Source: Tetramitus jugosus (lineage: Eukaryota; Protista; Heterolobosea). Taken from it: a stretch of 64,000 nt of DNA. Location of the stretch: NCBI GenBank assembly GCA_937625935.1, contig OW569363.1:310001-374000 (forward strand), read 5' to 3'. Positions 51,978-62,677 of this stretch are shown one piece after another; the stretch's first letter is position 1; every line of letters starts with the position of its first letter. Below the pieces are notes generated by a model. That model saw only the letters and a list, made by a program, of their open reading frames with translations. It ran no database searches and was not told the origin of the DNA. Position numbers and translations under genes: made by a program.

Positions 51978-53894
51978 ATGCAGTCAAGAAGAGTAACATT
52001 ATCGTTGGTCAAAAAACAATATTCTCTGTCCAACAGAGTTTTGTTTTGCAACAACAATCCACCTTCATTATTTGCTCTCCACAATCACCAACAACCCATT
52101 ACCCTCAATCATCAGACAATCAGAACGCAAGCAACAACAACTACCACAAACGCACATCATGATGCTGAAGAATCATCTCATCCTTCCTCCTCCCATCATC
52201 ACTCCAAACCCATCCTCAAACAAAAGAAAATGTCAAGCTACAATAGCAGAGCAAAGCTACCAGATGACATGCAAAACGTGTTTGAGATGATGTCGGAAAA
52301 ACAAATGGCACAATTGGAGTCACAATTACCACCTCCCACCATTACCTATAGTGAACCAACAACATTAATAACAGAAGAAGAAGAAGACATATCATCATCA
52401 TCATTTAATGAGAAGGAAATGATCAAAGTGTTTGCAGAACAAATGAACAACATTATTCAAAAAATCAATCCAAGTATCAGCAGTGAAATTAAGATTGGAT
52501 TGGCAGTGAGTGGAGGCATAGACAGCATGTCACTCTCCATTCTGATGTACAAGTGGAAAATGTCATTGCCATTGGCCGTTCAACACAAGGTTTCCATTGT
52601 TGCCATTACAGTGAATCATGCAAAACGTGAGGAGAGTCAATTGGAAGTCGTACAAGTCAAGCAATGGATGAAACAAAAGTATCAGTTCGACACACTCATC
52701 TACAATGTCAAGTGGCAGAATGAGAAGATCAATCAGGAAACATGCAGAGAAAAGAGATTGTCTTGCTTGGCTGATGCGAAGGCACGGTGTGATTTGAGTG
52801 TGATTCTATTGGGACAGCACCTTGATGATCAAGTCGAAGTGTTCTTGTATCGAATGGCGTTGGGCAGTGGCTTGCAGGGACTTTCAGGTGTTCCTGATGT
52901 GACTCATTTGATTGGATGCGATTTCGCAAGGCCTCTGCAGTTGTTTAGAAAGCAGCAATTGACGCAACTATGTATTGAAAACAATCAGCCTTGGTTGAGT
53001 GATCCGACAAACTTTGATCAGCACGAATTCCGAGGCAGTGTGCGCGCATGTTTGCCAAAGTGGGAGAATTATAATATTTCGCACGAGGAAATCATCCATG
53101 CAATGCATTCGATTCGAAACTTGGTACAAGTCATGAATCATACGATTGGAAACTTTATACAGACAAATGTTAAATTTGATCGCAATCTCGGCTGTGTTGC
53201 AATCAACTTGAATGGACTCTTGACGTTACTTCCAAAAACCCATGCTCTCACATTGATTGGAGCTCTATCACAATATGTGTCGAACAAGAAGTATGTGCCT
53301 AGAACTGCGTCTCTCGAAACTGTGTACAACTTTTTTAAGAAGGCACAAAACAATCGCGAACTCGAGAATACAGTTACTTGTGGCCTGTGTTTATTCGTTG
53401 TAAAGAGTAACACAATCTATGTTGCTCGAGAGCCAACACCGACCAAAAAGTCATCCACTGTGTCATTCAATTTTGAAGAAACAGTTCTGTTCGATAATCG
53501 GTACAAGATCACACTATCCCATCAGCACAAGTGGAACTCACGTGTCGATCGAGGTGCTCAGTTCGATTTTTGGCAAAATGGTGATTCTGTAGGCTACGAA
53601 GAAGATGCACATAGCTCAAGGGAACAAAACTATCATCAAAGAGCAAATACCTCAAACTCGTCACTCAGAGTGAGAGGATTTAAGGATAAAGATTGGCAAG
53701 TCGTCGCGCGCTCAATCTGGAACAAGACTAGGTACAACACTCCTTGGTTCTTGCGCTATGGAATACCTGTAATTGAAGATTCACAAGGTATTCTCGCGAT
53801 CCCTCTGCTTGGGTACAAGAGAAATAGAGATATTTATTGGAAGTGTGAATTCATATCAGACACCAATGTCATTCAAAAGTTTGTAAACAAGTGA
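51978..53894 (+). CDS. tilS: tRNA(Ile)-lysidine synthase, organelle-targeted
   Basis: PP-loop AVSGGIDS, VNH, GQHLDDQVE, GSGLQGLSG, RPL, DPTN; long N-terminal presequence-like extension; ATG at 51978 in AAAAATG context. Confidence 0.88.
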   Translation: MQSRRVTLSLVKKQYSLSNRVLFCNNNPPSLFALHNHQQPITLNHQTIRTQATTTTTNAHHDAEESSHPSSSHHHSKPILKQKKMSSYNSRAKLPDDMQNVFEMMSEKQMAQLESQLPPPTITYSEPTTLITEEEEDISSSSFNEKEMIKVFAEQMNNIIQKINPSISSEIKIGLAVSGGIDSMSLSILMYKWKMSLPLAVQHKVSIVAITVNHAKREESQLEVVQVKQWMKQKYQFDTLIYNVKWQNEKINQETCREKRLSCLADAKARCDLSVILLGQHLDDQVEVFLYRMALGSGLQGLSGVPDVTHLIGCDFARPLQLFRKQQLTQLCIENNQPWLSDPTNFDQHEFRGSVRACLPKWENYNISHEEIIHAMHSIRNLVQVMNHTIGNFIQTNVKFDRNLGCVAINLNGLLTLLPKTHALTLIGALSQYVSNKKYVPRTASLETVYNFFKKAQNNRELENTVTCGLCLFVVKSNTIYVAREPTPTKKSSTVSFNFEETVLFDNRYKITLSHQHKWNSRVDRGAQFDFWQNGDSVGYEEDAHSSREQNYHQRANTSNSSLRVRGFKDKDWQVVARSIWNKTRYNTPWFLRYGIPVIEDSQGILAIPLLGYKRNRDIYWKCEFISDTNVIQKFVNK

Positions 53895-54209
53895 AAACCA
53901 CCACCGCGATGTCGAGAAAAGTCTTCATTTCCCTTTCGAACTGATGTGGGTATTATTTCTGTAGATGGCTGATCTGTGTTTTTTGGTCTTGATGACATCC
54001 CATCAACTGTGTTTGCGGATTTGTTCCTCTTATTTAGGGAAAACTCCTTGCGAAAACTTGCTGCCAACCTTTCTATTGGTGACCTTACAATTAACAATTA
54101 CAATTCGCGGACAAACAACTCCCCCTTTGCTTTAAGAAGCGAACAGTTGTTGCTGCCAGCTTTTGCCGCAACATCCAAAAACATCCAAACACACCTATTC
54201 CCAACAACA

Positions 54210-55478
54210 ATGAGAGTTAACACCATTTTGTCAGTAGCACTCGTTTTGCTATTCTGCGTTTTGTCAGTCTACGCAAAGAGAGTTAGCGTTGATGACGTTA
54301 TGACCAAGGCTGAATTCTACAAGCAACACTGGGGAAAGTACCAAAAGGACTTTAAGGAGGCTGCTGCCATCTTGAAGACTATCTCTAGCTCTGATGCTGA
54401 CAAGAACATCTTCAAGAAGATCAAGGTCGACAAGATTTTGGGAGGCTTGAACAAGGTTAGCCAAGCTGCTGGTCACATCCAAAGCATCAAGGGTTTGTTC
54501 ATGGCTGATTCCGAAGCTGACAAGAAGTTCTGGAAGAAGATCAAGATTGACAAGATTTTGGGTGGTTTGGGAAAGGTCAGCGAAGCTGCTGGTCACTTGC
54601 AAACTATCAAGGGTGTCTTCATGGAAGATGTCGCAGCTGACAAGATTAACATTGGCAAGATTTTGTCTGGTGTTGAAAAGGCTTCTCAAGTTGCTGGTCA
54701 CTTGCAAACCATCAAGGGATTGTTCTCCATGAGCGATGCTGAGAAGATTAACTTCAACAAGATCTTGAACGGTTTGGGCAAGGCTTCCCAAGCTGCTGGA
54801 CACATCAACAACATCAAGGGTTTGTTCATGTCAGATGCTGAAAAGATCAGATGGAACAAGGTCTTGGGTGGTTTGGGCAAGGCTGCTCAAGTTGCTGGCC
54901 AAATCAACACCATTAAGGGCGTTTTCATGTCTGATGCTGAGAAGATTAACTTTAACAAAATCTTGAACGGTTTGGGCAAGGCATCTCAAGCTGCTGGACA
55001 CATCAACAACATCAAGGGTTTGTTTATGTCCGATGCCGAAGCTGAAGCTGAGAAGAAATTCTGGAAGAAGATCAAGTGGGACAAGATCTCCAACGGTTTG
55101 GGCAAGGTCTCCGAAGCTGCTGGACACATCCAAACTATTAAGGGATTGTTCCTGGCTGATGCTGCTGCTGAAGCTGAGAAGAAGTTCTGGAAGAAGATCA
55201 AGGTCGACAAGATCTTGAGCGGCTTGGGAAAGGCTTCTGAAGCTGCTGGTCATATCTCCACCATCAAGGGTTTGTTCATGTCCGATGCTGAAAAGATCAG
55301 ATGGAACAAGGTCTTGGGCGGTTTGGGAAAGGCTGCTCAAGTTGCTGGCCAAATCAACACCATTAAGGGCGTTTTCATGTCTGATGCTGAAAAGATTAAC
55401 TTCAACAAGATCTTGAACGGTTTGGGAAAGGCTTCCCAAGCTGCTGGACACATTAACACTATCAAGGGATTGTTCTAA
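54210..55478 (+). CDS. Secreted multi-peptide precursor (422 aa): signal peptide, pro-region, 10 cationic amphipathic peptide repeats
   Basis: ATG in ACAACAATG context; signal MRVNTILSVALVLLFCVLSVYA; ten units ending IKG(L/V)F separated by acidic spacers; strongly biased codon usage like PDHA1. Confidence 0.9.
   Translation: MRVNTILSVALVLLFCVLSVYAKRVSVDDVMTKAEFYKQHWGKYQKDFKEAAAILKTISSSDADKNIFKKIKVDKILGGLNKVSQAAGHIQSIKGLFMADSEADKKFWKKIKIDKILGGLGKVSEAAGHLQTIKGVFMEDVAADKINIGKILSGVEKASQVAGHLQTIKGLFSMSDAEKINFNKILNGLGKASQAAGHINNIKGLFMSDAEKIRWNKVLGGLGKAAQVAGQINTIKGVFMSDAEKINFNKILNGLGKASQAAGHINNIKGLFMSDAEAEAEKKFWKKIKWDKISNGLGKVSEAAGHIQTIKGLFLADAAAEAEKKFWKKIKVDKILSGLGKASEAAGHISTIKGLFMSDAEKIRWNKVLGGLGKAAQVAGQINTIKGVFMSDAEKINFNKILNGLGKASQAAGHINTIKGLF
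54402..55475 (+). repeat. Coding tandem array of about 99-126 bp units (10 copies)
   Basis: Recurrent GCTGCTGG.CAC...ATCAAGGG.TTGTTCATG..GATGCTGA.AAG; units 5+6 recur as units 9+10. Confidence 0.95.
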
Positions 55479-55702
55479 ATGAATCACATTTTTTGATACA
55501 GCATTACCTTCCTCGTTTCTTGTACACGTGCTATACTCGGGCCCTGTAATTCTCCCCGTTTAAGCGGAGATTCACACACCAAAAAAACTAGCTGTTGGAA
55601 GGAACAGAACTTCGCAACACACAAACACTGGCGAACAATTGTGTAAACAGAGGCGTGTGTTATGCTAGAAGACGACCAGCGAGCAGTTTGACCAACCACA
55701 AC

Positions 55703-61906: not shown

Positions 61907-62677
61907 ATGAACGCACGCCTGGAAGATTATGAGTGTGCTCTGTGTCTCAAATTACTTGTGAACCCTGTGGGTACTTCATGCGGGCACACATTTTGTCAAT
62001 TTTGCTTACAGCAGAGTATCGACGCTGCCATTAGAGACAGAGCATCAATTTTACAGTGTCCACTGTGTCGAACGCCTGTACTTGAACAATTGGATGAAAG
62101 TGCGGCCAATGTATTAAAACCAAATGTCGTACTTTCTCAATTGTTATCCAGCGTGTTTCCACAAGAGTATCAACAAAGAATTGAAGAAGTGAAGCAAGAT
62201 GCCGAAGAGTACAATCAAACTCAAATTATAGGTGAGAGTTTGTACATTGGAAATAGACATTCACTCCGGGCGAGAAGAGGAGATGAATCGGACAATGTTC
62301 ATGAGTGGACCTGCTTTGTTCGCATGGATACCAGCGAAAAGACTGAAAAGTATATTGACAAGGTGATTGTGGATTTACATCCAACATTTTCACCCAGTAG
62401 GATTACATTAAGTCGTCCACCGTTTGAGGTGAGAAGATTGGGTTGGGGAATTTTCCAGATCCACGTACAAGTGTTCTGGAAATCTTGCTATCAAAAACCG
62501 CCAGAGAAATTCTCTTGGCTGTTGTCATTTGACGGTGTCGGCGATTTCACCTCTCACGATGTTCAATTTGTAACAAGGAAAATTCCAGGTGCAATACAAC
62601 AACCTCAAGACAGTGACGAAACGGTTCAACCTCTAGATGATGTCGATGAAGATATGAGCGACTCTGATGGCGAATAA
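61907..62677 (+). CDS. RING (C3HC4) + YEATS domain protein
   Basis: CALC...CGHTFCQFC...CPLCR; HEWTCFVR...IDKVIVDLHPTF...PPFEVRRLGWGIFQI. Confidence 0.9.
   Translation: MNARLEDYECALCLKLLVNPVGTSCGHTFCQFCLQQSIDAAIRDRASILQCPLCRTPVLEQLDESAANVLKPNVVLSQLLSSVFPQEYQQRIEEVKQDAEEYNQTQIIGESLYIGNRHSLRARRGDESDNVHEWTCFVRMDTSEKTEKYIDKVIVDLHPTFSPSRITLSRPPFEVRRLGWGIFQIHVQVFWKSCYQKPPEKFSWLLSFDGVGDFTSHDVQFVTRKIPGAIQQPQDSDETVQPLDDVDEDMSDSDGE

Follow-up and report, generated by a model that had tools for sequence, protein, structure and literature searches.

A candidate antibacterial peptide polyprotein and its cassette family in the amoeba Tetramitus jugosus

Introduction

Killing of ingested bacteria by free-living amoebae is known mostly via saposin-like proteins and lysozymes. 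According to PMC5890168, which cites Herbst et al. 2004, naegleriapores, amoebapores and Dictyostelium Apl are amoeba multi-domain precursors that give rise to several antimicrobial pore-forming peptides and are routed to lysosome-like compartments. These proteins have disulfide-bonded saposin folds (six Cys), whereas the Tetramitus jugosus units described here are ~30 aa long and have no Cys.

Multi-peptide precursors of antimicrobial peptides (AMPs) as such are already known. In melittin the acidic pro-parts are removed by dipeptide trimming, and such trimming of melittin and cecropin pro-peptides parallels the spacer removal predicted below. Fungal KEX2 repeat proteins (alpha-factor, Ece1/candidalysin) are likewise secreted chains of repeated peptides, and alpha-factor also has Glu-Ala dipeptide spacers; these proteins are, however, defined by KR sites, which the T. 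jugosus precursor lacks between its units. The insect apidaecin prepro-polyprotein resembles this precursor in its signal peptide, its many near-identical isoforms and its short acidic spacers that serve as processing signals (PMC11549390). The apidaecin spacers hold RR and Pro (RREAEPEAEP; PMC11549390) and the peptides are Pro-rich ribosome inhibitors, whereas the T. jugosus units are putatively helical, come from a protist, have no Pro, no dibasic site and no sequence similarity to apidaecin. Frog prepro-magainin, dermaseptins and ranid AMPs share a signal peptide, an acidic spacer and linear Gly/Lys-rich cationic helices of similar length. Ranid precursors place a KR site ahead of a single peptide (PMC13128954); unlike the frog precursors, the T. 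jugosus protein has no KR before its peptides, no amidation Gly, no detected homology and no continuous amphipathic face in its units. Protists can also turn bacterial-type enzymes against bacteria, as Trichomonas vaginalis does with NlpC/P60 enzymes that break down peptidoglycan and keep bacteria in check (PMC6299479). Sister genes of the T. jugosus precursor end in such a domain, but the Trichomonas enzymes are not reported as polyproteins with cationic cassettes and the precursor itself carries no enzyme domain.

Here we describe a T. jugosus gene that, with a probability of about three in four, encodes a precursor of membrane-active antibacterial peptides in this bacteria-eating amoeba. 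Judged from its sequence, the precursor would work like the insect and frog multi-peptide precursors and appears to belong to neither, as homology and dibasic sites are both absent. What is notable is the host lineage, the spacer code and the fusion of peptide cassettes with wall hydrolases.

Gene structure and genomic setting

The window analysed is a 64,000-nucleotide stretch of the T. jugosus genome; coordinates without a contig name are positions within it, and every feature of the gene lies on the + strand. Positions 54210-55478 form an intronless open reading frame whose product (422 aa, 45.5 kDa) runs from a signal peptide through a 42-aa pro-segment to ten units joined by acidic spacers. 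The initial annotation of this DNA had proposed the reading frame, a 22-aa signal peptide, a ~42-aa pro-region and ten Cys-free units of 28 or 33 aa with their charges, separated by acidic spacers and ending at the stop codon; all are as it described.

The signal peptide (54210-54275; ~22 aa, cleavage site inferred) was recognised by hydropathy, with a Kyte-Doolittle 11-residue mean of up to 3.1, and a like N-terminus is found in all family members. Hydropathy gives no later transmembrane-like stretch in the precursor (maximum 19-residue mean 0.58). The whole precursor has one Cys, located in the signal peptide, and no saposin Pfam match, in agreement with the earlier view that it is not a saposin-like amoeba pore-former. 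The pro-segment (54276-54401) terminates in an acidic spacer and contains a +3 amphipathic 23-mer (54315-54383; moment 0.47), which may be an eleventh, different peptide. Similarity between the pro-segment and the second module type of the paralogs is not significant (p 0.19).

Four units are 33 aa long with a net charge of +6: unit 1 (54402-54500; aa 65-97), unit 2 (54522-54620; aa 105-137), unit 7 (55053-55151; aa 282-314) and unit 8 (55179-55277; aa 324-356). The remaining six have 28 aa, namely unit 3 (54642-54725; aa 145-172; +3), unit 4 (54744-54827; aa 179-206; +4), unit 5 (54843-54926; aa 212-239; +5), unit 6 (54942-55025; aa 245-272; +4), unit 9 (55293-55376; aa 362-389; +5) and unit 10 (55392-55478; aa 395-422; +4), which directly abuts the TAA stop. 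Nine acidic spacers of 5-9 aa lie between units (54501-55391). The array encodes eight distinct peptides: unit 6 has the protein sequence of unit 4 (5 synonymous differences) and unit 9 that of unit 5 (2 synonymous differences). Cys and Pro are absent from all ten units and His is present in eight. Length, charge (+3 to +6) and lack of Cys fit the size class of linear cationic helical AMPs (12-50 aa, positive, no disulfides). Tandem Repeats Finder gave 332-568 for the unit array, against 50-70 for all other arrays in the window.

The neighbours are ordinary eukaryotic genes (a TilS-like PP-loop protein upstream, ArfGAP-C2 downstream, NAD(P)H-hydrate dehydratase and a Rab-like GTPase), so the gene is neither a contaminant nor a member of a cluster. 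The upstream neighbour (51978-53894, +) is a nuclear gene for a TilS-like PP-loop protein; this protein has a long N-terminal extension and is probably mitochondrial. A compact RING-YEATS fusion is encoded at 61907-62677 (+).

Transcription, codon use and selection

Contigs from RNA runs of four studies cover 54192-55480 with no splice joints, which sets a minimum for the unspliced transcript, whose true ends may lie beyond. The contigs start at 54192-54219 and leave 53988-54161 without any cover; an upstream GTG start (53976) was rejected on this ground, favouring the ATG at 54210. Contigs of the poly(A) run X1 agree with the array to at least 99%, which excludes an assembly artefact.

In three soil metatranscriptomes contig depth on the unique 5' part of the gene is 813-1918 versus at most 11 on flanking genes, and in run X1 it is 39 versus 8 (a ratio of only ~5); contig depth is a poor measure of expression, and the runs had been picked by presence of the peptide gene. 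The soil depths hint at very high expression without measuring it. Flanking-gene contigs in the soil runs are 98-99% alike, which indicates the same kind of organism. The initial annotation had likened the codon bias to that of PDHA1. In fact preferred-codon use is 0.95 in the precursor reading frame, top of the 32 in the window and well above the 0.68 of PDHA1.

The apparent difference in contig depth between soil and culture could mean competition or stress. This would suit a reading in which the chain is processed alike but eukaryotes (fungi, rival protists, small animals) are the main targets of the peptides, or the peptides serve as inter-amoeba signals. Cationic helical peptides are often cytolytic, and fungal repeat precursors, which offer a parallel, give pheromones and toxins. 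We nevertheless consider this reading unlikely: eight variants per gene and a very marked codon bias are more in keeping with a bulk effector than with a receptor ligand, the low mean hydrophobicity of the units (0.32-0.42) suggests a preference for anionic membranes, and the enzymes co-encoded in sister genes are of peptidoglycan-directed types (NlpC/P60, LAS/M15 fold, SH3b).

An allele on JGI contig L069 has 11 units, one of them new and each carrying its spacer, in a short-read assembly of a repeat whose unit count may be off. It differs from the window gene by 9 synonymous changes and 1 non-synonymous change over 323 alignable codons. All of the nine single-base strain differences checked in the soil runs are synonymous, and unit pairs within the precursor give pS 0.41 and pN 0.18. 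On these comparisons the peptide sequences evolve under purifying selection, while entire cassettes come and go.

Shape of the units

The hydrophobic moment of whole units at 100 degrees is 0.13-0.18, not above that of shuffles (p 0.44-0.66). The best single period is 110-112 degrees, with p 0.03-0.12 when any angle is allowed, which indicates modest whole-unit amphipathicity. The best 11-mer, in the N-terminal half of the 28-residue core, has a moment of 0.65-0.78, and the C-terminal 11-mer a moderate 0.45-0.52. The hydrophobic faces of these two segments are 211-233 degrees apart and hence out of phase. The amphipathic helix first proposed for the units needs correcting: the moments show a strong N-terminal segment and an out-of-phase C-terminal one, not a single continuous magainin-like helix. 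They would be better matched by a helix that is bent, or split into two segments, at the Gly/Ala/His middle, as in helix-hinge-helix peptides.

The 33-42 aa periods of the chain resemble helical solenoids. Were the chain to stay intact as a helical repeat protein (lipid-binding, LEA/apolipoprotein-like, surfactant or cyst-wall), this resemblance, one weak match to a TPR protein (P0003, E 0.01) and the absence of dibasic sites would be expected. Several observations make this quite improbable. Spacer length changes by two residues at a time over the range 5-9 aa, and in other genes the units occur singly or dispersed among unrelated modules. No meaningful family was found in Pfam, PDB or Atlas; Pfam gave no LEA, apolipoprotein or TPR-like match, so the confident match to a non-processed family for which the initial annotation had allowed did not appear. 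AlphaFold did not arrive at a confident fold for units 4-7 (pLDDT 37.6, pTM 0.30), which is weak evidence given the shallow alignment.

Spacers and processing

The precursor has the layout of a polyprotein precursor, with a signal peptide, repeated cores and a conserved processing motif. Its spacers consist of one Met/Leu followed by 4, 6 or 8 residues that alternate small and acidic, then Lys. Across the precursor, the paralog C33 and four proteins of GCA_037189345.1, spacer length is even in 26 of 27 spacers, and an acidic residue stands at P1 in 25, at P3 in 25 and at P2 or P4 in none; the 27 are related repeats of ~10 independent types, not independent cases. As background, the spacer motif falls in even register in 13 of 28 occurrences in other window proteins. 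No KR or RR lies between units, and the sole KR (aa 23-24) immediately follows the signal peptide. The KEX2-processed layout suggested at first therefore does not fit, and the likeness drawn to frog precursors does not extend to the KR site that ranid precursors have before the peptide.

Mammalian cathepsin C cuts off Gly-Glu, Ser-Glu and Ala-Glu activation pairs. The simplest reading of the spacers is that an endopeptidase cuts behind the hydrophobic residue and that cathepsin C then takes off the Ser/Ala-Asp/Glu pairs. This enzyme trims dipeptides up to a stop, and Lys/Arg is disfavoured at S2 (PMC11337848). The T. jugosus genome has ~4 cathepsin C-like genes, legumain-like genes and 2 genes of the DPP-IV family, but these enzyme types are common in eukaryotes generally, which counts against the processing reading. 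The same alternation also fits a register of X-Ala pairs (DPP-IV type), shifted by one residue, which would leave Asp/Glu on the N-terminus; alternatively, the cut may fall after Asp/Glu, giving other exact peptide ends. The stop codon had been taken to mark the mature C-terminus. For internal units it leaves the C-terminus unfixed, as the motif shared by the family is hydrophobic-[SA]-[DE] and the Met/Leu may be retained.

A family of polyproteins with exchanged cassettes

Two paralogs carry the units in other settings. C33 (L002:700-2250, +; 516 aa) has eleven +8/+9 units of related type and further near-neutral helical modules behind like spacers. C40 (L003:1111-2013, -; 300 aa) combines a Cys-rich peptide and a further helix with a single unit and, at its end, a domain of 132 aa. 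This single unit is nearly the same as units 7 and 8 (27 of 36 residues identical to the unit 8 region), has unit 7 as its closest counterpart in the precursor, and sits between unrelated modules directly before the hydrolase-like end domain. C40 is the one gene in which the exact unit type is joined to such a domain.

The C40 end domain has at least 77 homologs in bacteria, rotifers, fungi and protists. In 71 of them H70, H77 and D84 are invariant and H126 nearly so, with an H-x6-D pattern and a near-invariant HWD motif, as expected of the zinc ligands (H-x6-D...H) of this fold. Pfam gave no match. The model of the domain is confident (pLDDT 96.6). Among its structural matches are Hedgehog-N, MepA, LdcB, Zn DD-peptidase, VanX and phage endolysins; the top 15 all belong to the Hedgehog/DD-peptidase superfamily, at Z 4-7.4, below the tool's safe level of 8. 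It is probably a LAS/M15-type peptidoglycan peptidase, judged from this model. The domain is common to Deinococcus, actinomycetes, bdelloid rotifers and fungi, no Pfam model of it exists, and it may have moved between kingdoms several times.

Other genes show similar fusions. In C5, Cys peptides and a helix are joined to an NlpC/P60 domain; in C37, C7 and C35, SH3b is joined to an NlpC/P60 or M15-like enzyme behind a similar motif. Secreted NlpC/P60 and SH3b proteins of T. jugosus comprise C5 (L045), C35 (L044), C37 (L041), C7 (L042), C41 (L043) and C5 (L046). C37 and C7 are near-identical copies; in L046 the C-terminus carries a hydrophobic segment and the usual catalytic Cys motif is missing.

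In four proteins of another eukaryote (GCA_037189345.1) the unit type alternates with unrelated Pro-rich peptides behind like spacers, and one of the four ends in a Gly-rich domain. Proteins of JGI sample 3300062347 and two further JGI contigs have 3-9 helical units before an enzyme domain, which is NlpC/P60 with intact catalytic motifs in P0009, P0094, P0095 and P0097 and M15-like in P0093 and P0096. The C33-type related unit (E 5e-14) lies upstream of NlpC/P60 in P0009, P0094 and P0095, with Cys/His motifs intact, and upstream of the M15-like domain in P0093 and P0096. The contigs of this sample are gene-dense and eukaryotic, and a divergent beta-tubulin (L047:761-2134) is at best 64% identical to that of T. 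jugosus; the source is possibly another heterolobosean.

Pro/Arg-rich and Gly/Trp-rich polyproteins of T. jugosus share the build of the precursor. In C43 (L083:1075-1749 and L089:1042-1842, +) and C42 (L091:805-1830, +) a signal peptide precedes Pro/Arg-rich peptides that close with aromatic/Leu-Ser-Asp, and the C-terminal domain is a Gly-rich repeat that recalls attacin/hymenoptaecin and has no Pfam match. C43 (L090:874-2136, -) and C4 (L092:1261-2247, +) have ~9 or 10 Gly/Trp-rich units of 22 aa with strongly acidic spacers after a small Cys-rich module, and give a weak summed match to Gram-negative porin.

Taken together, the units appear to be swappable cassettes in a polyprotein family rather than a structural repeat. 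They move between genes, adjoin unrelated peptides, vary in number together with their spacers and end at a stop codon, and so behave as released products. Their repeated position beside peptidoglycan-directed domains points to bacteria as the target, and the family is probably antibacterial.

The fixed co-delivery with hydrolase domains in sister genes, together with the broken amphipathic face, also suits peptides that bind, clump or sensitise bacteria, for example as outer-membrane permeabilisers that admit hydrolases, and do not kill alone. We regard this as very improbable, since the precursor gene and C33 carry 10-11 copies of peptides only, with no enzyme, and charge and length are within the usual range of directly lytic peptides.

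Model for precursor function

We propose that the ten, or perhaps eleven, peptides of each chain are antibacterial and membrane-active. Gene structure, presence in RNA assemblies and the cassette family are observed, and every step after translation is inferred. The signal peptide would send the chain along a secretory/lysosomal route, with the acidic spacers and pro-segment partly masking the cationic units during transit. An endopeptidase would cleave at the hydrophobic-[SA]-[DE] motif, and a dipeptidyl aminopeptidase, most simply cathepsin C, would strip Ser/Ala-Asp/Glu pairs and stall at the first Lys of the unit. The released peptides would bind anionic bacterial membranes via the strongly amphipathic N-terminal helix and, bent near the Gly/Ala/His middle, permeabilise them. 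Sister polyproteins would supply cell-wall hydrolases, together with Pro-rich or Gly-rich peptides, at the same site. For the place of action, the digestive vacuole is somewhat favoured over release outside the cell, given the lysosomal type of the trimming enzyme and the His in most units.

Some observations count against this model: no AMP family is matched, whole-unit amphipathicity is modest, the C40 enzyme activity is read from a fold match below Z 8, and the NlpC/P60 fusions with intact motifs carry a related unit type. The original proposal, a multi-peptide precursor that is processed and probably antibacterial, is strengthened by cassette exchange, fusion to domains of cell-wall-hydrolase type, the dipeptide register of the spacers, expression and purifying selection; KEX2-type processing and the straight magainin-like helix drop out of it.

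A wider proposal, to which we give even odds, is that heteroloboseans possess a modular arsenal against bacteria that has so far gone undescribed. A single spacer code, free of dibasic sites and trimmed in dipeptides, would release peptides of the helical cationic, Pro-rich, Gly-rich and Cys-rich kinds along with cell-wall hydrolases of bacterial type. Such an arsenal would parallel the main AMP classes of insects in a lineage only distantly related to animals, and the precursor gene would encode one of the arsenal's most abundant effectors in soil. If true, a linear-peptide polyprotein family with built-in wall hydrolases would add a mechanism, bear on whether animal-style AMP precursors originated more than once and offer new natural antibacterial leads. 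Tetramitus is a common soil grazer and the transcript occurs in soil RNA of several studies, so the peptides may matter for prey selection in soil.

Searches for relatives

The initial annotation did not recognise the precursor as a described family. The literature search likewise found no description of a linear-peptide polyprotein family in heteroloboseans, most subscription papers lying outside its coverage, and no AMP family was matched in Pfam, PDB or Atlas. Cecropin, magainin, dermaseptin, moricin and piscidin gave no Pfam match (precursor at E up to 1, single units at E up to 10), and the unit profile matched no AMP chain in PDB. Pfam matches to the precursor were rejected as repeat-summed noise that lacks coherent stretches.

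Neither the viral contigs nor, with a unit-specific DNA pattern, the prokaryote genomes yielded a bacterial, archaeal or viral relative of the unit; two matches in the prokaryote genomes were both unrelated. The same pattern gave six matches in metagenomes, of which two are real (L067, L069); three of the others lie in phage tape-measure-like genes and one outside a readable frame. Protein searches covered set length windows and a capped number of candidates, and speak neither way on Naegleria or other protists. The TPR/PilF match P0003, as well as P0005-P0008, P0011, P0012, P0014 and P0015, was set aside as compositional or an unrelated repeat. P0004, from a marine metagenome (ERR1712159), has helical units that open with an aromatic pair and are joined by other spacers; at 37% alike, it may be a relative or a convergent case.
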